Shown here in pieces: positions 3,741 to 60,340 of a stretch of DNA of 64,000 nucleotides. Made by a program: the position numbers and the translations under genes. The notes beneath the pieces are model-generated. The model was given only the letters and a program-made list of their open reading frames with translations, ran no database searches and had not been told where the DNA came from. This stretch comes from Anaeramoeba ignava BMAN (taxonomy: Eukaryota; Protista; Anaeramoebae). Where the stretch lies: positions 62,001-126,000 of the forward strand of contig JAPDFW010000111.1 of the NCBI GenBank assembly GCA_028826165.1, read 5' to 3'. How positions within the stretch are numbered: position 1 is the stretch's first letter; each line of letters opens with the position of its first letter.

Positions 3741-9916
<6,176 letters not shown>

Positions 9917-32640: not shown

Positions 32641-35226
32641 ATGGAAAAACAAAAATATCTTGAATTTATTGATTATTATAATGATGTTGTAATGAGTTTA
32701 TTTCAAAATTCTGGTTGTGGTTTGTTATTATCGATTTATATTATTTTTTTAAAATAAATAATAAATAATTTTTCTTTTTAAAATAAAAATTTTTTTTAGA
32801 AAGAGATGCACATGATAGGATTTTTAATCTTCTTAAAGCAGATATTGATCCTTCAAAGTTTTTATTAAATCAATTTTAAATCAATTTTAAATCAATTTTA
32901 TATCAATTTTAAATCAATTTTATATCAATTTTAAATCAATTTTATATCAATTTTATATCAATTTTAAATCAATTTTAAATCAATTTTAAATCAATTTTAA
33001 ATCAATTTTATATCAATTTTAAATCAATTTTAAATCAATTTTATATCAATTTTAAATCAATTTTATATTAATTTTATATTAATTTTATATTAATTTTAAA
33101 TCAATTTTAAATCAATTTTAAATCAATTTTAAATCAATTTTAAATCAATTTTAAATCAATTTTAAATCAATTTTAAATTAATTTATTTAAATCAATTTTA
33201 TATTTTTTATATCAATTTTAAATCAATTTTAAATCAATTTTAAATCAATTTTAAATCAATTTTAAATCAATTTTAAATCAATTTTAAATCAATTTTAAAT
33301 CAATTTTAAAAATCAATTTTTAAATCAATTTTAAATCAATTTTATATTAATTTTAAATCAATTTTATATCAATTTTAAACCAATTTTTAATCAATTTTAA
33401 ATCAATTTTAAATCAATTTTAAATCAATTTTAATTTAATTTTAATCAATTTTATATCAATTTTATCAATCAATTTTAAATTAATTTTATATCAATTTTAT
33501 ATCAATTTTAAATTAATTTTATATTTTATATCAATTTAAATCAATTTTAAATCAATTTTAAATCAATTTTAAATCAATTTTAAATCAATTTTTAAATCAA
33601 TTTTAAATCAATTTTTAAATCAATTTTAAATCAATTTTAAAATCAATTTTAAATCAATTTTATATTAATTTTAAATCAATTTTAAATCAATTTTAAATCA
33701 ATTTTAAATTAATTTTTAAATCAATTTTAAATCAATTTTTAATCAATTTTAAATCAATTTTATATTAATTTTATATTAATTTTAAATCAATTTATATCAA
33801 TTTTAAATCAATTTTAAAACCAATTTTAAACCAATTTTAAAACCAATTTTAAATCAATTTTAAATCAATTTTTAAAATCAATTTTAAATCAATTTTAAAT
33901 CAATTTTAAATCAATTTTTAAATCAATTTTAAATCAATTTTAAATCAATTTTAAATCAATTTTAAATCAATTTTATATCAATTTTAAATCAATTTTAAAT
34001 CAATTTTATATCAATTTTATATCAATTTTAAATCAATTTTATATCAATTTTATATCAATTTTATATCAATTTTATATCAATTTTAAATCAATTTTAATTT
34101 AATTTTATATCAATTTTATATCAATTTTAAATCAATTTTATATCAATTTTATATCAATTTTAAATCAATTTTATATCAATTTTATATCAATTTTATATCA
34201 ATTTTATATCAATTTTAAATCAATTTTAATTTAATTTTATATCAATTTTATATCAATTTTAAATCAATTTTATATCAATTTTAAATCAATTTTAAATCAA
34301 TTTTAAATTAATTTTAAATCAATTTTAAATCAAATCAATTTATAGAGAAATTGGTGATGAATTGATAAAATCATTATTAAATCCTCCAAATTATGAAATT
34401 GCAATTGATTCTTATAATTTACTTATGAAAATTTTAAAAAATAAAAAAGTATCATCATTTTAAAAAAAATTCATTTATAATTTAAAATTTATAATTTAAA
34501 AAATTTAAATTTTGAAAGTTAAACGATTTTGTATTAGAAAAAACTTTAATTAACCCATTCAATATTTTAAATATTATCAACAAAATCATTGAGAATATTA
34601 AAGATGAAACATTGATTCACGGATTGATTTTATTTCTTAAATTATTATTCCAATTTATCAAAACAAAAGAAATCAAACTTCCAACAAAACTAAAAACACA
34701 AATGATTCCAAAATTATTTAAACTTAAAAGAGTTTTGAAAAAAAAAAAAAAAGGATTTAGTTCAGAAATATTAGAATTTATTGCGATTATTACAAATTTA
34801 TCAACACATTCAAGCAATATTTATGAAATTATAAAAAATTTTGATAATTTAGATGATGAAATGATGTTTATTTTCCAAAAATTAGAAAATGAATCAAAAT
34901 TTAATTTTTCAATTTGTTTTTTAGCTCATAGATCAAATATTTATAAAACAAAATATCCAAGAATAACTGATGTTTCAAAAGATTTACCTAAATTTATTTG
35001 CCAAATTCATTTTAAATTAAGTGAATCTAATTTGTTCCACTTTTATATTTTATTATGGTTTATTGTTTTTTGTTTAAAAAGCAATAAATTAGAGAATTCT
35101 CCAAAATTGAAAAAAAGATTAATTAAAATTGAAAAAGAGAGTTCTAAAACTGTTTCAAATTCTTTATTTCAATCATTTTTTATTGAAAAGAATTTAGAAT
35201 TAAATTCTTTAATAAAAGATTTTTAA
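32641..35226 (+). CDS. Hypothetical multi-exon protein
   Basis: ATG at 32641, small exons (~32641-32715, 32800-32857, 34347-34448) and a terminal exon ~34519-35226. No domain recognised. Confidence 0.5.
32858..34346 (+). repeat. Intron filled with an 11-bp (atcaattttaa/atcaattttat) satellite
   Basis: About 1.5 kb of tandem repeat between GT and AG. Confidence 0.88.
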
Positions 35227-35291: not shown

Positions 35292-38200
35292 ATGTCAGAT
35301 AAAGAAGAAAATAAAGAAGAAAAAAATAACGGAAAAAATAAAGAAAATGATTCTAAAACAGAAAATGATATAAAAGAAATAATTGAAAATCAAGAAGATG
35401 TAAAAAAAAAAAACAAAAAAAAATTTTTTATAATTAAAAATAATAATTTAAATAAAACAAACTTTATTTAGGAAACAAAAAACCAAGAAATGAATCTTAA
35501 TTTAGTAAATTCAATTAAAAAATTTAATTAAAAATTTAAATAAAAATTCAATTAAAAAATTTAATTAAAAAATTCAATTAAAAAATTTAATTAAAAATTT
35601 AATTAAAAATTTAAATAAAAATTTAATTGATTACTTATTAAATAGCATCAAAATGAAAATCAACAAAAAATTATTTATGAAGAACAAACTCTTATAGAAG
35701 GAGAAGTTGAAATTACTCTTATTGATAAGATTATTTATATTTTTCCTCAAGATCAAGATGAAAAAAAACAACATTTTTATGGTGTTCTTCGTTTAACAAA
35801 TTATCGTCTTTATTTTATTCCAACTGAATTAGATTCTATAGTAATTTATTCTTCTTATTTTCTTATTATTTATTTATTTATTTAAAATACTTTTTTTTTA
35901 GAAATTTATTCCTTCTCAAAATTTTCCTGAAATTACTCTTGGAAATATTGCTTCAATTGAAAAATTTGGTGGAATTAAAAGCAAAAGTAAAAATTAAAAT
36001 TAAAATTAAAATCAAAATTAAAATTAAAATGAAAATTTAAATTAAAATTAAAATTCAAAATTAAAATCAAAATTAAAATCAAAATAAAAATTAAAATTAA
36101 AATTAAAATTAAAATAAAAATTAAAATTAAAAATTAAATTAAAATTAAAATTAAAATTAAATTAAAAAAAATTAAAATTAAAATCAAAAATTAAAATTAA
36201 AATTAAAATTAAAATTAAAATTAAAATTAAAATTAAAATTAAAATTAAAATTAAAATTAAATTAAAATTAAAATTAAAATTAAAATTAAAATTAAAATTA
36301 AAATTAAAATTAAAATTAAAATTAAAAATCAAAATTAAAATTAAAAATTAAATTAAAATTAAAATTAAAATTAAAATTAAAATTAAAAATTAAAATTAAA
36401 TTTAAAAAATTAAAATTAAAATTAAAATTAATATTAAAATTAAAATTCATATTAAAATTAAAAATTAAAATTAAAATTAAAATTAAAATCAAAATTAATT
36501 TATAAAATTAAAATTAAAATTAAAAATTAAAATTAAAATTAAAATTAAAATTAAAATTAAAATTAAAATTAAAATTAAAAATGTTTTTTCAGATATTTTG
36601 GGATTCGGATTTGAAATTTTGCATAAAGAATTTAAAAAAACTAAATTCTATATTCCATATAAAAGGATAATATCAAAAAATTTTATTGAAAGTTTAGAAC
36701 AATTAATAACACCAACTAAAATACAAGATACTTTTGCTTTCTCACATAAAAAACAAAAAGATATTGATGATGGTTGGCAAATTTATAATCCTATTGAAGA
36801 ATTTAAAAGATTTGGTAGAAAATTTAAAATTAAAATTAAAATTAAAATTAAAATTAAAATTAAAATTAAAATTAAAATTAAAATTAAAATTTAAAATTAA
36901 AATCAAAAATTAAAATTTAAAATTAAAATTAAAATTAAAATTAAAATTAAAATTAAAATCAAAATTAAAATTAAAATTCAAATTAAAATCAAAATTATTA
37001 TTAAAATTAAAATCAAAATCAAAATTATTATTAAAATTAAAATTAAAAATTAAAATTAAAATTAAAATTAAAATTAAAATTAAAATTAAAATTAAAATTA
37101 AAATTAAAATTAAAATTAAAATTAAAATTAAAATTAAAATTAAAATTAAAATTATTAAAAAAAGAAATTCCAAATGATTCCTGGAGAATTTCTCAATATA
37201 ATGATGAATATAAATTATCTGAAACATATCCTTCTCATTTAATAATTCCAAATGATTTAAAAGATGAAGAATTAACTAATATTGCTTCCTCAAGATTTTT
37301 AAACAGAATTCCAGTATTAGTATGGAAAAATAATTCAGATACAGTTTTTTTATTACGAGGAGCACAATCTAAACAAGGTTTTTTTTTTAAAATTAAAATT
37401 TTCATTTTAAAATTAAAATTTAAAATTAAAATTAAAATTAAAATTAAAATTAAAATTAAAATTAAAATTAAAATTAAAATTAAAATTAAAAATTAAAATT
37501 ATTAAAATTAAAATTAAAAATTGAAAAAATTTATTTTAAAAATTAAAATTTAAAAATGAAAATTAAAATTAAAATTCAAATTTTAAAACAGAAAATTAAA
37601 AAAAAAATTCAGAAAATTAAAATTAAAATTTATTTTAAAATTAAAATTAAAATTAAAATTAAAATTAAAATTAAAATTCAAATTCAAATTAAAATTAAAA
37701 TTAAAATTAAAATTAAAATTAAAATTAAAATTAAAATTAAAATTAAAATTAAAATTCATTTTAAAATTAAAATTAAAATTCATTTTGAAATTTAAAATTA
37801 AAAATTCATTTTAAAATTAAAATTAAAATTAAAATTAAAATTAAAATTAAAATTCATTTAAAATTTAAAATCAAAATTAAAATTCATTTGAAATTGAAAT
37901 TAAAAATTGAAATTAAAATTTTGAAATTAAAATTCATTTTAAAAAACTAGAGAAAAAAACAGCATCTTATGATGAAAAATACATCAAAGAAATAATCGAA
38001 CTTACAAAAAACAAAGGAGATTTTATAATCATAGATTGCCAAAACAAAAAAAACACATCCAAAAACAAAAACAAAAACAAAAACAAAAACAACAAAAAAG
38101 AATTAACAAAAATAGAAAGTGATTACGGATGTAAAATTGAATTTTTAGGGATAAGTGCCAAAAAAGTTATCGAAGAAAGTATAAACAAACTAAGAAACTT

Positions 38201-40854: not shown

Positions 40855-43800
40855 TTAATTTTCTTTCTTTTTTTCATCATTTTCTTTTAAAATTTCGATT
40901 TGAGTTTCAACTTCTTTTTGTTCTTCTTTTTGTTCATCTTTTTTTCTAATCCAAACTTTTGGAGATTGTTTTTTAATTAAATTATTCTTTGAATTTTGAT
41001 TTTGATTTTCAATTTGATTTTCAATTTGATTTTCAATTTGATTTTGATTTTTCTTTTTTGTCCAAATATGAGGAGATTTATTTAAATTTTGTTTCTGTTT
41101 CTGTTTTTTCTGTTTTTGATTTTCATTTTGATTTTTATTTTCATTCTGGTTTTCATTTTTTCTAATCCAAACTTTTGGAGATTTATTTTGATTTTCATTT
41201 TCATTTTGATTTTGATTTTGATTTTGATTTTGATTTTGATTTTCATTTTCATTTTGATTTTCAATTTGATTTTCATTTTCATTTTGATTTTGATTTTGAT
41301 TTTGATTTTGATTTTGATTTTGATTTTGATTTTCAATTTTGATTTTGATTTTGATTTTGATTTTGATTTTGATTTTGATTTTGATTTTGATTTTGATTTT
41401 GATTTTGATTTTCAATTTGATTTTGATTTTCCTTTTTCTTTTTTGTCCAAATATGAGGAGATTTATTTAAATTTTGATTTTGATTTTGATTATCATTTTT
41501 CTTGAAATTCTTTGGAGATGAAATTTTTTGAACTTTAATTTTATTTTCTGGAATATTATAATTATAATTTATATTATTCAAACTAATTAAATCTCGAGTA
41601 GATAAACGAGCACCTTTTCTAAACAAAGATCTTCCACCCAAATTAGTAGCACCAACAAATTCATTTTCAAAAAGAACATCTGCAGTTTTTGTTGTTTGAT
41701 TAATTTGAATAATAGTTCCACGAGATCCAAAAGGAGGAATTCCTGTTTTGTTAACACTAATTACTTTCTCTCCAAGATCTAAATATTGTTGAGATGTTAT
41801 TGAATCAGTTTGCTGATTTCCACGAATTAATAAACTTTCATTCACATTATCAATTCTCAATTTGGAAAGTTTTCGAAATTTTTTTGGATTGTAAAAATTA
41901 TCCAAATTTCTCACTTGAGATTTCATTAAACAAAAATCATTCGATGAAACATGTTGCAATTCTATTTGCGAAGATGGAAGTGATTGAATCCATTCAAAAA
42001 CAACTTTAACATATTCATTTTCACGCATTGGAAGCTTGATATTATTAAAAAATTTAAAGTGCGAATCATTTTGAGGTTTTAATCTATTCAAAGCATAAAA
42101 AACTTGTGGGAATTTCCTTTTATAATTTTGAAGAATATGAAATGCATCAGGACTCAAGAATAAATCGTTATTCCGTGTTTGCCAACTATTTGAATATGAA
42201 ATTAAACCTGGTTTTAATAAAGATTCCTTATAGAAATAGAAATTCAATCCAATATTATATTTTCCAATATAAATACTTCGAAGAATTTTTTGAAGAACAC
42301 TTAATCTTGTTCTCATTATTTTGGCAACTGTTAGTATTGAGATCCATTGAGATCTCAATTTATTGTGTCGAAATTGATGGAAAGAAGATAATTCAATCGA
42401 AAAAGTATGTTTTTCAGGAAAAGATTGAATGATTTTTCCTGTTGCTCCATAATATTTTTTGCCAATATAAATCACATTTTCTTCATTTAGAATTTTGTAA
42501 TCAATTTTTCTTTTATTTGTTACATTGAATAAATCAAAAAGAACAAGATCTAAAGGAACTTGAAATGAAACTGAATTTGGATTTGAATTGTAATTAGAAT
42601 CTAAATTTGAATTTGAGTTTGAATTCCATAAATCTAAATTTTGATTTGAATTATAATTATAATTATAATCTGAATTTGAATTATAATTATAATCTAAATT
42701 TGAATTATAATCTGAATTTGAATTGTAATTATAATTGTAATTGTAATTATAATTGGAATCATTTTGAAAATTATAAATTGTTTCTTCATTTTCACTTGAA
42801 GCATAAACAATTGCTATTGGATTGTTTTGTAAAGTTACTCCATTTTGTTTCGATAATATACCTAATGTTTTTTCAACTTCTTCTTCATAATTGATCTGAT
42901 AAGATTCAGATTGATTATAATACCATCCATTATTAAAAACAATTCCAGTTATTCTTGCTTTGAAAAAAAATGGATAATTGATAAAACATGGAACTCCAAT
43001 ATAATCAAGATGATTTGTTGAATAATTAAAATCTCCATTTAAAACACGAATAGTAACCATTGGATAATATCTATTTGTTGATGATTGAAATTGCAAAAAG
43101 GAAAAAGATGGAAATCCATAAGGAATATAACTGGAAATATATTGATTTTCTTGATTAGGAAATTGGATTGTTTGCTTTTTTGGTTCAAATTTTCTGATAA
43201 TTTTTTGGATTTCTTTTGTACTTTTGCATTCTTTCAAATCTTTAAAACCTGGAATATTAGAATGAATAATTTCTCTGGATATTTTCTGACTGAATTTAAA
43301 CACCAAATTATCCCAATTATATTGATTTAATTCCTTTTCTTTTTTCTTTAATTTGTTTTCAAGATCAGCTTCTTTAATAGCTTTTACAACAGTTTCAACA
43401 TCAATAATTGGGACATAATTTGCAAAATTAATCCGAGCTTCTCTTGTGCTAAAATCATCAATTTCCAGAATATTTTCAGGGAAAAAATGCTTAATTGGTG
43501 ATTCTTTGCTTGTCAATAAAGACCGAAAAGATTCAGGAAGAAGAGAAGCACTTTGAGGCGGCAAAACCATAAGTAATGAATATAAAATTGGAAGTGGCTC
43601 AGTTGATCCAAAATTAATATTATCAAAAAACTCTTGATACCCTGATAAATCCTTTAGAAAAGGTGAGAAGCAATAGGGATATTGCCAATCCCAAGAAGGT
43701 GTTCCATAATAATAATATGAAGTGCAAAATGCTAATCCTTGTAAATATGATTGAAATACTTTTTCGATATGATTTGATGAGTATTCTTGTTGAAATAATT

Positions 43801-46800
43801 TTGAATAATATTCCTCTTTTAAATCATAAAGAGTATCATCTGATACTTGTTCATCTTGATCATAAATATTCATATTTGGTGGTTTTTCAAAATCATATTC
43901 GTTATTCATTTTATCTTCTGAGTTTTGATCATTAAAATGTAGTTCATCTTGAGGATCTTCTAAATAAGAAAAGGTTTCTGAATCATTTTGTGAATTTTCC
44001 TCAAGATTTGAATTTAATGAAGAATTATTTGGAGCATCAGAATCTTTTTCTTCAATATCATTGTTTTGTGAATCTATAAATTCATCAATTTTTTCAAATT
44101 CTATAACAGTATCTTCCATATTCAAAACATGTTTACTATCATCAAAATTTTGACTTTCGTTTTGACTTTCATTTTGACTTTCATTTTCATTTTCAATTTC
44201 ATTTTCAATTTCTTTTTCATTTTCAATTTCTTTTTCATTTTCAATTTCAATTTCCTTTTCATTTTGACTTTGATTTTGACTTTGACTTTGATTTTGATTT
44301 TGATTTTGATTTTCATAAAATTTTATCGTTTTTTGGAGAAATTTTGGATTGTTTTTTAAAAATTCTTCTTGATATTCCTCAATTAATGAAAGGAAAATTT
44401 GTAATTGTTCATAATTGATTTTATCTTTGTTAACTAAATAACCAAATTTTGATTTGAATTCACAATATTTTTCAAACAAAATATTCAAGCCACCTTTATC
44501 AATTTCAAATCCAATCATAGTAGGAAGAAAATCATTTCCAAGAAACAAACAAACAAAAATAAAATCATCAATCAATCTTTCGAAATCATTTTTAACAAGA
44601 TCCAATTTTTCTTGGAAATCAAAAATTAAATATTCTCTCAATAAATTGATAAAAATGAACTGATATTTTTCTTGATTTGTTTTTGATTGAAGTTTCAAAT
44701 TTTTAAAATAGTTTCCGCTATAAATGTTTGAAATTAAAACAATATTTTTATGATGAGTTGCTAATGATAAAAGAACCATATCTGAATCAGGAGAATAAAT
44801 ACAATAAGTATCATTTATTGAATAATCATTTGATTGTTTTTTCAATTTAATATCATCAAATATCTTGTGTTCTCCTTCGCCAGGAACAGAAGAATTACTG
44901 AAAACTACTTTGATTTTTTGCCAAAGAGGATGATTATTGATTTTTTCTCGAATTAAGTATTCAATTGATTTATCTAATTTTTTCATAAATTGAGTTCCTG
45001 GAGTGATTGAATTTGGATCAAATTTTAGTTTTTGGATTCTTGGATTTTTTGGGTTTAATTTTGCTTTTTGAACAGAAGCAAATCGTCTTTCTCTTTGTTC
45101 TTTTAATTTTGCAAGAGGTGAAATACCTAAATCAATTCAAATCAATTAAAAAAAAATTTAAATCAATTCAATTAAACAATTTAAATCAATTCAATTAAAT
45201 CAAAATTTAAAATTTAATTTAATATTTAATTTAATATTTAATTTAATATTTAATTTAATATTTAATTTAATATTTAATTTAATATTTAATTTAAAATTTA
45301 ATTTTTAATATTTAATATTTAATTTAATATTTAATTTTTAATATTTAATTTAATGTTTAATTCAATTCAATTCAATTCAATTCAATATTTAATTCAATTC
45401 AATTCAATTCAATTCAATTTAATATTCAATTCAATTTAATATTTAATTTAATATTTAATCTTAATTTAATATTTAATTTAATATTTAATTTAATATATTT
45501 AATTCAATATTTAATTCAATATTTAATATTTAAATTCAATTCAATATTCAATTCAATTTAATATTTAATATTCAATTCAATTTAATTTTAATATTTAATA
45601 TTCCATTCAATTCAATATTCAATTCAATATTCATTCAATTCAATATTTACTAAATTAAATTTATTCAAATTCATTCAATTCAATTCCAATTCAATTTCAA
45701 ATATTCCAATTCAATATTCAATTCAATTTAATTCAATTCAATTCAATTCCATTCCAATTCAATTCGATTCGATTCAATTCGATTCAATTCAATTCAATTC
45801 AATTCATTTTTATTCAATATTCAATATTCAATTCAATTTATTAAATTTAATAAATATTCAATATTTAATATTTTATTATTTAAATATTATTCAATATTCA
45901 ATTTCAATTCGATTAATTCGATTTAATTATTCAAATTCATATTAAATATTCATTCCAATTCAATTCGAATTATTTCAATTTAATTCAATTCAATTCCAAT
46001 TCTATTCAATTCAATTCCAATTCAATTCAATTCCATTCAATATTTATTTAATATTTATTATTCAATTCAATATTTAATATTCACCAAATATTCATTCAAT
46101 TCAATATTTAATATTTTTCCAATTTAATATTTTCAATTCCAATTATTCAATTTCAATTCAATTCAATATTTAATTCAATTCAATTCAATATTTAAATATT
46201 CAATTTAATATTCAATTCAATTCAATTCAATTCAATATTCAATTAATTGATTCCAATTTCAATATTATTCAATTTAATTTAATTCAATTCAAATTCAATT
46301 TTAATATTCGATTCAATATTATTATTCAATTTTAATATTTCAATTCAATTCAATTCAATTTAATATTCAATTTAATTTCAATTCAATTTCAATTCAATTT
46401 AATTCAATTCAATTCGAATTTAATATTCAATTCAATATTCAATTCAATTCAATTCAATTCAATTCAATGTTAATATTCAATTCAATATTCAATTCAATTT
46501 TTATTCAAATTCAATATCAATATTCAATTCAATATTCAATTCAATATTCAATTCATTCCATTTTAATATTCAATTCAATTTAATATTAATTCAATTCAAT
46601 TCAATATTCAATTCAATTTAATATTTAATTTAATTCAATTTAATATTTAATTTAATATTCAATTCAATATTCAATTCAATTATTTAATATTCAATATTCA
46701 ATTTAATATTCAATTCAATATTTAATTCAATTTAATTCAATTTAATTCAATTCAATTCAATTCAATTCAATTCAATTCAATTTAATATTTAATTCAATAT

Positions 46801-52975: not shown

Positions 52976-54892
52976 ATGTCAAATGAAAATAAAAATCAAA
53001 ATTTAAATCAAAATCAAAATCAAAATTTAAATCAAAATCAAAATTTAAATGAAAATAAAAATCAAAATGAAAATGAAAATCAAAATCAAAATCAAAATGA
53101 AAATCAAAATGAAAATCAAAATGAAAATCAAAATTTAAATGAAAATCAAAATGAAAATTTAAATGAAAATGAAAATGAAAATGAAAATCAAAATCAAAAT
53201 CAAAATCAAAATCAAAATCAAAATCAAAATCAAAATCAAAATCAAAATCAAATTCAAAATCAAAATCAAAATCAAAATCAAAATCAAAATGAAAATGAAA
53301 ATCAAAATCTAAATCAAAATTTAAATGAAAATCATAATGAAAATTTAAATGAAAATCAAAATCAAAATCAAAATCAAAATCAAATTCAAATTCAAAATCA
53401 AAATCAAAATCAAATTCAAAATCAAAATAATTCATTAGAATTACAAGAAAAATTAAAAGAATTACAACAAAATTATCTTAATATTCAAAAGGAAAATCAA
53501 AAACTTAAAGAAAACTCTCCAACTCATAAATTAGAATTAAAAATTAAAAATTTGGAAAACTATTTGCAACAAATCGAACAAGAAAAAACAAGAATTGAAA
53601 CAGAAAAAACTTCACAACAAAATAAAATTATGGAATTTGAAGAAAAAATTGGTCAAATTGGAATTCAACTTGCACAAAAAAATCAAGAAGTCGATGATTT
53701 GGAAAAAAAATTAAATCACTTTAAAATTCTTCTTAAAAAAGCTAATGATCATATCCAAGAATTGAAAAAAAAAAACGAATCAAAAAATTCTGAATCAAAT
53801 TCATTGAATCAAAATTATCAAGAATTGAAAAAGAAAAATGAGGATTTGGAAGCCAAACTAGAAACATTTACAAAATCAAAAACAGAAGAAAAGGAAGAAA
53901 TTATAAAATATCAAGATGAATTGAATCAACAAAAAGAATTAGTCAATCAACTTCAATTCAAAACGCAAAATTTTGAAGAAGAAATCAAAAAAAAGGATTT
54001 AATGATCCAAAATTTAGAATCAATCAACAAAAAACAAGAAGAAGATTTTACAGCTTATAAATCACGTGCTCAAATTGCTCTTGCTCAAAAAATGGAAGAA
54101 AATAGCCAAGCAAACAAGCCCAATCCAGAAATGGAATATTTCAAACAAGAAATCCAAGAATTGAATCAAAAAATCAAAAAAATTCAAACACTTAATGAAA
54201 AACTCCAGAAAAAACTTCAGAAAAAACAAATCCAATTCGAATCAAATATCCCTCAAATTTCTTCCACAGAAAACAAGGAATATGAAAAGAAAATTAAGCA
54301 AATCGAAACTCAATGGTCTCAAAAATACGACCAATTAAGTCAAGAAAGAGAAAATTTAACAAAACTTCATTTAAAAAAAAACCAAGAAATGAATTTCAAA
54401 CACAAAAAAATTCTCGATGAAATGACTAAGCAAATCCAAGAATTGCAACAAGAAAAATTCTCAATTTCACAAAACCATGAAAATCAAAAATCACAAAATG
54501 AAATGACTATTCAAAATTTAAACAATGAAATCCAATCTCTTAAAAAACAAAACCAAGAACTACTTTCAGAATCTCAATTAAAATTCTCAAAACAAATTTT
54601 TCAAAATCAAAATGAAAATCAAAATGAAAAAAATAAAACAATTTTAATTCAAAAACCTAAAGAATCTCCAAACCAAACTTTAATTAATTCAGGAAATCAA
54701 TCCAAAACTAAAGAAATTAAATTTGATCCAACTCAATTTAATTATTTGAAAAACATTATTATGCAATATATGATGGATAATGAACAGCATGAAAAACTAA
54801 TTCCTGTAATTGCTGCTCTTTTGAAATTAACCAAGAAAGATCTTCAAAAAATTGAAGATGCAAGATCTAAAAAAGGATGGGGATTTTGGTGA
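52976..54892 (+). CDS. GRIP-domain golgin
   Basis: Long coiled coil ending NYLKNIIMQYM...LIPVIAALLKLTKKD...KKGWGFW. Confidence 0.85.
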   Translation: MSNENKNQNLNQNQNQNLNQNQNLNENKNQNENENQNQNQNENQNENQNENQNLNENQNENLNENENENENQNQNQNQNQNQNQNQNQNQNQIQNQNQNQNQNQNENENQNLNQNLNENHNENLNENQNQNQNQNQIQIQNQNQNQIQNQNNSLELQEKLKELQQNYLNIQKENQKLKENSPTHKLELKIKNLENYLQQIEQEKTRIETEKTSQQNKIMEFEEKIGQIGIQLAQKNQEVDDLEKKLNHFKILLKKANDHIQELKKKNESKNSESNSLNQNYQELKKKNEDLEAKLETFTKSKTEEKEEIIKYQDELNQQKELVNQLQFKTQNFEEEIKKKDLMIQNLESINKKQEEDFTAYKSRAQIALAQKMEENSQANKPNPEMEYFKQEIQELNQKIKKIQTLNEKLQKKLQKKQIQFESNIPQISSTENKEYEKKIKQIETQWSQKYDQLSQERENLTKLHLKKNQEMNFKHKKILDEMTKQIQELQQEKFSISQNHENQKSQNEMTIQNLNNEIQSLKKQNQELLSESQLKFSKQIFQNQNENQNEKNKTILIQKPKESPNQTLINSGNQSKTKEIKFDPTQFNYLKNIIMQYMMDNEQHEKLIPVIAALLKLTKKDLQKIEDARSKKGWGFW

Positions 54893-54964: not shown

Positions 54965-55950
54965 TTCAAAAATAAGAATAGATTTAAATTTAATATTTAA
55001 TTTATAAATTAATTTAAAAATATAATTTCTAAATGAATTTTATTATTAAAATAATAATTTTATGTTTTAGATTTAAATATTTTATTATTTAAATATTTAA
55101 CATAAAAATATAAAAAATAAGAATAGATTTAATTTAATATTTAATTTATAAAATAATTTAAAAATATAATTTAATATTTAAATCTATGTTTAAAATAATA
55201 ATTTATTGTTTTAGATTTAAATATTTTATTATTTAAATATTTAACATATAAATATAAAAATGAAAATTGATTTAATTTAATATTTAATTTATTAATTAAT
55301 TTAAAAATATAATTTAATATTTAATTTTATTATTAAAATAATAATTTAATGTTTTAGATTTAAATATTTTATTATTTAAATATTTAACATAAAAATATAA
55401 AAATGAAAATAGATTTAATTTAATATTTAATTTATAAAATTAATTTAAAAATATAATTTAATATTTAATTTTATTATTAAAATAATAATTTATTGTTTTA
55501 AATTTAAATATTTTATTATTTAAATATTTAACATAAAAATATAAAAATGAAAATAGATTTAATTTAATATTTAATTTATAAATTAATTTAAAAATATAAT
55601 TTAATATTTAATTTTATTATTAAAATAATATTTTAATGTTTTAGATTTAAATATTTTATTATTTAAATATTTAGCATATAAATATAAAAAATAAGAATAG
55701 ATTTAATTTAATATTTAATTTATAAATTAATTTAAAAATATAATTTATTTAATTTTATTATTAAAATAATAATTTATTGTTTTAAATTTAAATATTTTAT
55801 TATTTAAATATTTAACATAAAAAATATAAAAATAGATTTAATTTAATACTTAATTTATAAATTAATTTAAAAATATAATTTAATATTTAATTTTATTATT
55901 AAAATAATAATTTATTGTTTTTATATTTAAATATTTTATTATTTAAAAAT
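54965..55950. repeat. Tandem array of about 7 copies of a ~143-bp unit
   Basis: The unit aatagatttaatttaatatttaatttata...gttttagatttaaatattttattatttaaatatttaacata recurs at ~143-bp intervals. Confidence 0.85.
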
Positions 55951-56339: not shown

Positions 56340-59300
56340 ATGGATAATGATAATAATAATAACCAAATTGAAAATGCAAATCAAAATCAAAATGAAAATG
56401 AAATGAAAAATTTAGAAAAAAAAGTAACAAAAAATTTAATTAAAAATTATTCAAACCTTTTAAATGGAAATTCATTTAAAGATTTTTCAATTTTTGTTGA
56501 GAATAAATCAAATCCTTTTGAAATTAAAGTTCATAAATCAATTTTATCTTCAAGATCTCCTTTTTTTAATGAGTTTTTAAGGCAAGAATCTCTTTTTATT
56601 TCTTTAAATCAATTTAATAAAAAAGAAATGGAATCAATTTTGAGTTATATTTATTATGGAAATATTTCTTTTGAGAATCAAGAAAATCTTTTTCAATTAT
56701 TAGAAATTTCAATTTATTTTAAATTAAATTTATTGAAAAGAAATTATTCAAAAATTTTAAATTCAATTAATTATTCAAATTTTTCCAATTTTTATTCCAA
56801 AATCGAAATTTAAATTCAAATGAAATTGAAATAAAATGTTTTGAATTAATAAATCAAAATTTTTCCCAAATTCAGAATAATGAGAATTTATTCAATTTAA
56901 CTAAAGAAGAAATTATCAAATTTATTCAATTTAAACAAGAAAAAAAAGAAATTTTTCAATTTGATTTTTTTCAATTTTTAAATAATTGGATTAAAAAAAG
57001 AGTTAATTCATTAAGATTAAGGAAATTTAAGAACAAAATGAATGCAAAGAAAAGATTATTTCATTCTTTTTTTTCATTATTTGATAAAGATTCAATTTCA
57101 AAACAAGATTTTGATAAATTAAAACAATTTGAAATTTTTCTTCCAAATTCTTTTTTAATTCATTTTGAAAGAACTATTTTTCAAATTCAAGATCAAGAAA
57201 ATCAAACAAAAATCAAAGAAAAAGAAAAGGAGAATCAACAGATGAAAATTGAAATTGAAGAGAAATTGAAGAAAGAAAAAAAAGAAATTGAAGAGAAATT
57301 GAACAAAGAAATTGAAGATAAAAACAAGGAAATTGAAAACAAAGATGAAGAAAATCAAAATCTTAAATCTGAAAATGAAAAGAAAGATAAGATTCTCAAA
57401 CAAAAAGATGAAGAAATCCAAAATCTTAAATTATCATTTGAAAAAGAAATTGAAAAAGAAAATCAAATTCAAATTCAAATTGAAAATCAAAATCAAATTC
57501 AAAATCAAAATCAAAATCAAAATCAAAATCAAAATCAAAATCAAAATGAAAATGAAAATCAAAATGAAAATGAAAATGAAAATGAAAATGAAAATGAAAA
57601 TGAAAATCAAAATCAAAATCAAAATCAAAATCAAAATCAAAATGAATTGTTGAAGATTTTTTCAGATTCAGAAATTATTACAGAAGAAGAATATGTTAAG
57701 AAATTACAAGAATGGATAAATGATAATGAATTCTTTTCTAAAATGAAAAAAGGATTTTCAGCAAAAAGAGATGGATTTAATTCTCAAAATTGGCATAATA
57801 AAGTTGATGGGAAAGGAAAAACATTATTTATTATCAAAACAAAAGATAACTTTATTTTTGGAGGTTTTACTCAAGTTGGATGGACAAATGATAAATCAAA
57901 ATGGAGTGTTAAAGGAGGAAGTTATGGATTTATTAATGATCCAAATGCATTTATTTTTTCATTAAGAAATGATAAAGGGGATAGAAAACCAGATAAGTTT
58001 ACAATTAAAAAAGGAAAAGAAAAATATGCAATTAAATATGATTTAAATTGTGGTCCAAGTTTTGGATGTAAAAATAAATAATTTATATTTAATAAATATT
58101 TATTATTATAATTAAAATTAAATTAATAAATAATCCAAAATATTAATATAATCAATAATATTATTATTTCAATTTAAAATAAAATTAATTTTAAATTAAA
58201 TTATTATTAATTATTATTAAAATTAATTATTTATCTTTATTAAAATAGTGAGTAAATAATTTATATTTAATAAATTATAATTAAAATTAAATTAATAAAT
58301 AACCCAAAAATATTAATATAATAAATAATATTATTATTTCAATATAAAATAAAATTAATTTTAAATTAAATTATTATTAATTATTATTAAAATTAATTAT
58401 CTTTTATTAAAATAGATCGTAAATAATTTATATTTTAATAAATATTTATTATTATAATTAAAATTAAATTAATAAATAATCCAAAATATTAATATAATAA
58501 ATAATATTGTTATTTCAATTTAAAATAAAATTAATTTTAAATTTAATTATTATTAATTATTATTAAAATTAAATATTTATCTTTATTAAAATAAATAATT
58601 TATATTTAATAAATATTTATTATTATAATTAAAATTAAATTAATAAATAATCCAAAAATATTAATATAATAAATAATATTGTTATTTCAATATAAAATAA
58701 AATTAATTTTAAATTAAATTATTATTAATTATTATTAAAATTAATTAATTATCTTTATTAAAATAGTTGGTAAATAATTTATATTTAATAAATATTTATT
58801 ATTATAATTAAAAATTAAATTAATAAATAATCCAAAAAATATTAATATAATAAATAATATTATTATTTCAATTTAAAATAAAATAAATTTTAAATTAAAT
58901 TATTATTAATTATTATTAAAATTAATTATTTATCTTTATTAAAATAGGGGAGTAAATAATTTATATTCAATAAATATTTATTATTATAATTAAAATTAAA
59001 TTAATAAATAATCCAAAAATATTTATAATCAATATTATTTCAATTTTAAAATAAAATAAATTAAAAATTATTATTAAAATTAATTATTTATCTTTATTAA
59101 AATAGTTAGTAAATAATTTATATTTAATAAATATTTATTATTATAATTAAAATTAAAAATTAAATAACCCAAAAATATTAATATAAAAACAATAATTTTA
59201 AAATAAAATAAATTTTAAATTAAATTATTATTAATTCATTAAAATTAATTATTTATCTTTATTAAAATAGATTGTAAATAATTTATATTTAATAAATATT

Positions 59301-60340
59301 TATTATTATAATTAAAATTAAATTAATAAATAATCCAAAAATATTAATATAATAAATAATATTATTATTTCAATATAAAATAAAATTAATTTTAAATTAA
59401 ATTATTATTAATTATTATTAAAATTAATTACTTATCTTTTATTAAAATAGATGGTAAATAATTTATATTTAATAAATATTTATTATTATAATTAAAATTA
59501 AATTAATAAATAATCCAAAATAATATAATAAATAATATTATTATTTAAAATTTAAAATAAAAATAAATTTTTAAAATAAATTATTATTAATTATTATTAA
59601 AATTAATTATTTTATCTTTTATTAAAATAGTTGGTAAATAATTTATATTTAATAAATAATTATTATTATAATTAAAATTAAATTAATAAATAATCTAAAA
59701 TATTAATATAATAAAATAATATTATTATTTCAATTTAAAATAAAATTAATTTTAAATTAAATTATTATTAATTATTATTAAAATTAATTATTTATCTTTA
59801 TTAAAAATAGTTCGTAAATAATTTTATATTTAATAAATATTTATTATTATAATTAAAATTAAATTAATAAATAATCTAAAATATTAATATAATAAATAAT
59901 ATTATTATTTCAATTTAAAATAAAATTAATTTTAAATTAAAATTATTATTAATTATTATTAAAATTAATTAATTATATTTTATTAAAATAGCTCGTAAAT
60001 AATTTATATTTAATAAATAATTATTATTATAATTAAAATTAAATTAATAAATAATCTAAAATATTAATATAATAAATAATATTATTATTTCAATTTAAAA
60101 TAAAATTAATTTTAAATTAAATTATTATTAATTATTATTAAAATTAATTATTTATCTTTATTAAAATATTTATAGGTGATCTTCTGTTAAATTCTAAATT
60201 ACAATCTGGTTATTCAAATTTTGGTTTTACTTATAATCTACCTAATGGAATTAAATATGGAACAAATGAAGCTCAAAAGTTATTTAGCTGGTTCTTTTAA
60301 TAAATGGATTGTTGATGAACTTGAGACTTATTTCATTTAA
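56340..60340 (+). CDS. BTB-BACK-coiled coil-TLDc protein whose TLDc domain is interrupted by a microexon array
   Basis: BTB (KDFSIFV...IKVHKSILSSRSPFF); TLDc (FSAKRDGF...HNKVDGKGKTLFIIKTKDNFIFGGFT...AFIFSL...GPSFG); donor GT at 58068; last exon 60176-60340 (DLLLNSKLQSGYSNFGFTY...YLAGSFNKWIVDELETYFI). Single-base indels near 56740-56785 and 60278. Confidence 0.88.
58068..60175 (+). repeat. Array of about 12 near-identical ~175-bp GT...AG intron units separated by variable 3-nt exons
   Basis: Junction pattern aaaatAG-NNN-GTaaataat: TGA 58249, ATC 58416, none ~58592, TTG 58767, GGGA 58948, TTA 59106, ATT 59271, ATG 59451, TTG 59631, TTC 59811, CTC 59992. Confidence 0.93.

Follow-up and report, generated by a model that had tools for sequence, protein, structure and literature searches.

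A gene in the 64,000-nucleotide stretch of Anaeramoeba ignava DNA analyzed here (the window) is interrupted within its TLDc domain by a tandem array of near-identical units that start with GT, end with AG and are separated by variable inserts of about three nucleotides. The question this raises is whether the units are introns and the inserts single-codon exons and, if so, whether they supply the protein with a repertoire of loops. A first-pass annotation had suggested such a repertoire, with a Dscam-like choice among the inserts. We find that the array is real, strange, and constrained at its splice sites; the function we propose for it, argued from DNA sequence, is unproven.

The array comprises 12 unit bodies, typically ~178 bp long (range 157–182 bp), from a first GT at 58068 to a terminal AG at 60174–60175 (Table 1). 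They form only 11 GT-AG introns: where units 3 and 4 meet (58591/58592), 7 nt that include both AG and GT have been lost. The earlier description of about 12 units of ~175 bp, all bounded by GT and AG, therefore holds for the number of bodies and not for the introns. The other ten junctions are AG-insert-GT cassettes in phase 1, one of them with a 4-nt insert. The borders agree with the first reading (the TLDc exon ends GGA-T, and the last exon opens GT-GAT-CTT), as do the identity and order of the ten inserts and the nine dipeptides they would encode if included singly.

Table 1. Features of the BTB-TLDc gene and its intron array (window positions).
Feature	Position	Strand	Remarks
Long first exon, BTB-(coiled coil)-TLDc gene	56340–58067	+	ends in phase 1 after GPSFG; one net frameshift as assembled
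BTB/POZ domain coding stretch	56454–56750	+	residues 39–137
Indels relative to paralogs	56735–56784	+	+1 A (56735–56738), −4 A (56749–56753), −1 T (56780–56784)
TLDc domain, up to glycine-rich bend	57662–58066	+	profile positions 2–120 of 170
Intron array	58068–60175	+	12 unit bodies = 11 GT-AG introns; G+C ~2% inside units
Cassette 1	58249–58251	+	TGA
Cassette 2	58416–58418	+	ATC
Unit junction without AG, cassette, GT	58585–58598	+	7-nt deletion between 58591 and 58592
Cassette 3	58767–58769	+	TTG
Cassette 4	58948–58951	+	GGGA; 4 nt as assembled, GGA if G-run error
Cassette 5	59106–59108	+	TTA
Cassette 6	59271–59273	+	ATT
Cassette 7	59451–59453	+	ATG
Cassette 8	59631–59633	+	TTG
Cassette 9	59811–59813	+	TTC
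Cassette 10	59992–59994	+	CTC
Terminal intron	59995–60175	+	acceptor 6 nt longer than internal acceptors
Last exon, C-terminal part of TLDc	60176–60340	+	stop 60338–60340; extra A 60275–60278

The window gene matches both Pfam BTB (E = 3.5e-13, 50.1 bits, cut-off 20.5) and Pfam TLD (E = 1.8e-16, 61.0 bits, cut-off 24.5), its pieces having been searched apart. The TLDc match breaks off at profile position 120, before the array, and the last exon completes the domain. As assembled, the gene carries a net −1 frameshift at 56780–56784 (the two indels before it, +1 and −4, cancel to in-frame) and a +1 frameshift in the last exon, both in homopolymer runs and neither of them noted in the first-pass annotation. 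Because the assembly is nanopore-based (polished with short reads), these frameshifts may be assembly errors. The same +1, −4, and −1 indels (within 56691–56850) are present in paralog L028, which is 97.6% identical to the window gene over 661 gapless bases, and the pair is the likely product of a recent duplication or conversion; since the first frameshift is common to both, the window gene may also be a pseudogene.

The predicted structure of one paralog (P0002, pLDDT 96) has the TLDc fold, and Foldseek aligns it to every solved TLDc structure (E 1e-9 to 1e-5). In this model the array site is the turn before strand 144–146, and it aligns with a glycine-rich stretch of Skywalker; in Ncoa7, the glycine-rich bend joins two beta strands (PMC8608904). 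The array interrupts the glycine-rich beta-bend of TLDc. Loops at this site in annotated paralogs have 1–10 residues (most commonly 2–3), are rich in G, N, S, and Y, and form one of several hypervariable patches, while reading one or two cassettes gives loops with many Y, S, D, N, G, and F residues. The annotated array-gene models omit every cassette, which gives them the shortest loops, and such models are uninformative for 3-nt exons.

The window array has many relatives. A search of the genome of this anaerobic amoeba (42.8 Mb, 147 contigs) found dozens of other loci with 85–95% identity to it. The junction pattern AAAATAG-N3-GTAAA has 607 matches genome-wide, compared to 95 for a reversed control, 29 for the same pattern with N4, and 29 with N6, so the layout is not due to chance. 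The first-pass annotation had proposed looking for AG-NNN-GT repeats in other BTB-TLDc paralogs, and there are about 40 or more such arrays, nearly all of the placed ones behind the TLDc motif GPxFG. We read 21 arrays in full, and about 20 more are known from match coordinates only. All 20 arrays whose upstream exon is on the contig start right after GPxFG(G), in phase 1, and all 21 arrays read end directly before D-[ILF]. The loci read have 8–27 cassettes, and the last exon is intact in 18 of 20. The TLDc family of A. ignava numbers 556 candidates. Among the best 150 last-exon matches, ~41 have a separate short last exon, and the rest are intronless at the array site. A tree of 148 TLDc domains is poorly resolved, with array genes falling in several groups; in protein searches, all named close relatives were from A. 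ignava.

Arrays with shorter units also occur. Four tandem BTB-TLDc genes at C1:1057923-1073178 (minus strand) have cassettes spaced 60–110 bp apart, and one more such gene lies at C1:942330-942797 (minus strand, 60–110 bp). By match coordinates, all five short-unit arrays are directly behind TLDc exons, and their triplets are largely those of the long-unit arrays; a GGG cassette is found in the C1 arrays and not in the long-unit arrays read. At C87:271577-277248 (minus strand), 3-nt cassettes recur about every 85 bp over ~5.7 kb, which may amount to 60 or more units.

The units are under splice-site constraint. Both AG and GT are kept at 274 of 288 junctions in the 21 arrays (95%), and at most ~6 of 576 splice G's have been lost by substitution (~99% kept), compared to 58% for the internal C's of the same units, 245 of 590 of which (42%) are now A or T. 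Cassette length is equally regular: 257 of 271 are 3 nt long, and all are in phase 1. Every cassette longer than 3 nt (11 of 11) has a doubled base, and the 2-, 4-, and 5-nt cassettes are probably assembly errors.

Between these conserved sites, the triplets vary widely. The first-pass annotation had called the triplet the consistently variable site, and it is indeed the most variable 3-nt window (within-array diversity of 0.53, 0.33, and 0.66 at the three positions, vs. an intron mean of 0.03), but four C positions of the intron unit vary as well (0.26–0.54). Cassettes have a G+C content of 26.6%, compared to 1.9% for unit interiors. Two units with identical introns share a triplet in 9.9% of pairs, as do random pairs, which indicates that triplet and intron vary independently; nearby intron variants likewise showed no linkage to the triplets in the arrays read, nor to one another. 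Units differ almost as little between arrays (0.034) as within them (0.029), so they appear to have been exchanged or recently spread across the genome. Assembly error is out as a source of the triplets: 25 of them recur across contigs, and they differ by substitutions.

The earlier proposal that the triplets form a selected repertoire is supported only in part. The middle base of the cassette, which is the wobble position of the codon, is T in 81%, G in 16%, and A in 3% of cases and never C, in contrast to the intron T's, for which 176 changes to A and two to G were counted. At cassette positions 1 and 3 each of the four bases is represented, while no intron C site has become G. (Simple counting gives a cassette dN/dS of ~11, a value not relied on, as the method is unreliable in this AT-rich genome and yields 1.2–1.7 even in conserved columns.) However, G/C sites are hypermutable in the array repeats and the neighboring satellites (mean diversity 0.25–0.47), and much of the triplet set can be derived, by decay to A/T, from two or three ancestors richer in G/C: ATG, GTG, or CTG (the triplets with which last exons also open) and GGA or GGG. 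Part of the diversity therefore needs no selection, diversifying selection on the triplets is at most suggested, and some arrays are redundant (e.g., 7 ATG among the 12 cassettes of L028).

Stop codons give some indication of how many cassettes a transcript would hold. If cassettes are included singly, 23 of 248 readings from 20 arrays are stops (~9%), vs. 18 expected from pooling, i.e., there is no depletion; all 23 are in genes whose upstream base is T, with 8 of 26 in L023 stopping. The first-pass observation that no insert creates a stop with the upstream T is correct for the window array but does not extend to the others. Forward pairs of cassettes produce 34 stops (2% of pairs) vs. 52.6 expected (p = 0.03, with units that are not independent), and p = 0.065 if order alone is shuffled. 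With all cassettes joined, 17 of 20 arrays are stop-free vs. 13.1 expected (p = 0.03, with units that are related), the stops falling in three arrays, and in the nine arrays whose cassettes are all 3 nt, the loops are open and 9–17 residues long. The pattern points weakly away from the use of one cassette out of many, towards several per transcript.

Intron size is a second indication. Normal introns of this strain are most often 76 nt long and reach at most 4168 nt (PMC11550330). Skipping an entire array would require introns of 1.6–5.2 kb, at or beyond the extreme for the strain, while single units fit the norm; given these sizes, removal unit by unit would be the ordinary route, and it retains the triplets. 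No RNA structure beyond chance was found in a two-unit stretch lying outside the 5′ part of the first intron (fold z = −0.16), and self-complementarity in the units is generic to AT-rich sequence. None of the 165 closest protein hits is transcriptome-derived, though the database has such entries for A. ignava, and one more distant paralog is labeled as such. The array-gene clade may be weakly expressed in culture, or its near-identical paralogs may have failed transcript assembly.

We think it probable that the cassettes are translated in some form. Our preferred explanation, with a probability of roughly 0.45, is a micro-exon cassette system that yields TLDc loops of variable length through variable subsets of cassettes. 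Every unit would be a working intron and every triplet a working 3-nt exon. The spliceosome would run from the first donor to the terminal acceptor by way of a changing selection of the near-identical internal sites, leaving each transcript with zero to several cassettes. Because all junctions are in phase 1, residues would be built across them (the last base of one exon plus the next two bases), and any subset would stay in frame. One gene would thereby specify a set of beta-bend loops differing in both length and sequence; the window gene could make 8 loops with one cassette, 32 with two, and 78 with three. Over evolution, unit duplication, loss, and exchange between arrays, together with AT-biased mutation, would renew the triplets. 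The likely product would be a diversified binding tip on a BTB protein of the cullin-3 adaptor type. The overall interpretation in the first-pass annotation survives in this form, on the strength of complete and conserved GT-AG introns, frame-preserving 3-nt exons, a hypervariable loop, and dozens of paralogs, without its one-of-many choice. More tentatively, and against somewhat longer odds, the arrays could constitute a splicing generator of junctional diversity at single-codon resolution, in which ~40 or more BTB-TLDc genes use random subsets of 3-nt exons; with tens to hundreds of loop variants each, they would supply a repertoire of binding loops that recognizes foreign or symbiont proteins.

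The best surviving alternative, which we nonetheless regard as unlikely, is a spliceable satellite: an AT-rich minisatellite that grew within one intron, in an array mostly skipped whole, with drifting triplets and splice sites that persist from splice-competent templates. Like a minisatellite, the array consists of homogenized head-to-tail units that have relatives outside genes. On the 3′ side of the L026 gene (233–1951 bases after the stop codon) lies a 168-bp sister repeat whose body is the same and whose junction has no splice sites, and three splice-less sister-repeat junctions are inside the L024 array. Membership of the unit in a satellite family explains its amplification and keeps a neutral reading alive. 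A 144-bp satellite adjoins many array genes, including that of the window (54968–55947); G/C sites decay fast, with AGA and TGA possible decay products of GGA; several gene copies have frameshifts; and no transcript-derived isoform turned up in protein searches. However, unused internal splice sites should decay along with the C's of the same units, and they have not. The retained 3-nt spacing indicates site-specific constraint, and a drifting satellite would not be expected to sit at one protein position, to leave 18 of 20 last exons intact, or to show all four bases at cassette positions 1 and 3 when intron C never becomes G.

Constitutive inclusion, which we consider rather more doubtful, would have each short intron removed singly and all cassettes joined into one loop of 8–27 residues. 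Diversity would then come from gain, loss, and exchange of units at the DNA level, as in a contingency locus operating in codons. Genomes with short introns usually splice intron by intron, and the modal intron of this strain is short; the mostly open all-in readings fit as well, as do the range of array sizes and the occurrence of the same units in several arrays (the nearest neighbor of a unit is in its own array in only 21% of cases). Set against this, natural loops stop at 10 residues, the C87 array would add some 60, and three arrays have all-in stops.

Least probable, and in our estimation quite improbable, is the Dscam-like mutually exclusive choice of exactly one cassette to give a two-residue variable loop: the ten single inclusions of the window gene are all stop-free and the resulting loops would fall in the commonest natural length class of 2–3 residues, but single-inclusion stops are not depleted across arrays, some arrays are redundant, no unique docking or selector-like element was seen in the two-unit stretch, which folds like its shuffles, and the introns between cassettes are long enough for splicing, so that nothing forces exclusion.

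Exons of 3 nt exist and are spliced, as shown by the neural microexons of animals (3–27 nt) and by recursive splice sites. Those microexons are single, conserved, and regulated on or off, in contrast to the cloned arrays of A. ignava. The micro-exon genes (MEGs) of Schistosoma have exons of 3–81 bp, and alternative splicing varies their proteins (PMC10526429). Both systems contain runs of very short exons, and the arrays likewise have several 3n exons in one phase. However, MEG proteins are secreted and mostly disordered, and the genes consist almost entirely of micro-exons of unequal size separated by long unrelated introns; in the arrays, exons are uniformly 3 nt long, introns are clones of one unit, and the site is one loop of a folded intracellular domain in a gene whose single long exon holds the BTB domain and most of TLDc. 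In arthropod Dscam1, too, exon cassettes have been duplicated in tandem, at a single position of a protein that serves recognition. Its exons encode half or whole Ig domains and are mutually exclusive through docking/selector RNA pairing (PMC8042237, PMC8791459), while cassettes here are one codon, no such pairing was found in the stretch folded, and exclusivity is unsupported.

The ROCO LRR and NB-ARC-TPR genes of brown algae, an expanded family of candidate immune receptors, have repeat exons in fixed phase that undergo both DNA-level shuffling and alternative splicing (PMC3341825, PMC11378527). Fixed phase, family expansion, and a non-animal eukaryotic host are shared with A. ignava, but the brown algal exon is a whole 72-nt repeat rather than one codon with residues formed across junctions. 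The array proteins have the same fold as the TLDc family (OXR1, NCOA7, TBC1D24, mEAK-7); in animals, TLDc proteins are conserved binders of the V-ATPase and few in number (PMC8608904), in contrast to the hundreds of A. ignava BTB-TLDc paralogs with hypervariable loops. By analogy, the closest working parallels to the arrays would be Schistosoma MEGs and the ROCO arrays of brown algae, with Dscam1 more distant, and the arrays belong to none of the three.

A literature search of incomplete coverage turned up no account of single-codon exons set between cloned introns, and we found no mention of TLDc or microexons in the A. ignava genome paper. If the cassettes are spliced in, they would be the smallest possible block for diversifying a protein by splicing, with residues made at the junctions themselves. 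The arrays would also be a natural assay of how the spliceosome handles runs of 3-nt exons (by intron definition, skipping, or recursive removal), and a candidate repertoire for anticipatory recognition in a non-animal, here a free-living protist with bacterial symbionts. Because standard aligners and gene finders miss arrays of 3-nt exons, similar systems may hide in other AT-rich genomes.

Several smaller observations accompany these results. Repeats 76–83% alike to the array are found at C36:34194-36392, C67:50454-53704, and C137:162103-167451, where they follow TLDc genes with short arrays or with no introns; they are probably the splice-less sister repeat. The last exons of L024 and L026 open at an acceptor of the internal type and carry one additional triplet, ATT (loop YYD). 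This would fit either the joining of a cassette to the last exon through precise intron loss or a terminal intron that was never gained. Upstream of the window gene, the 144-bp AT-rich tandem repeat is present in 6.9 copies, and the same repeat adjoins at least 13 other array loci, on either strand. The neighboring genes are ordinary, encoding an XRN1-type exonuclease (41333–44986, minus strand) and a GRIP-domain coiled-coil protein (52976–54892, plus strand). Long simple tandem repeats are present elsewhere in the window, at 8725–9651 (12 bp), 32865–34333 (11 bp), and 35973–37934 (6 bp).
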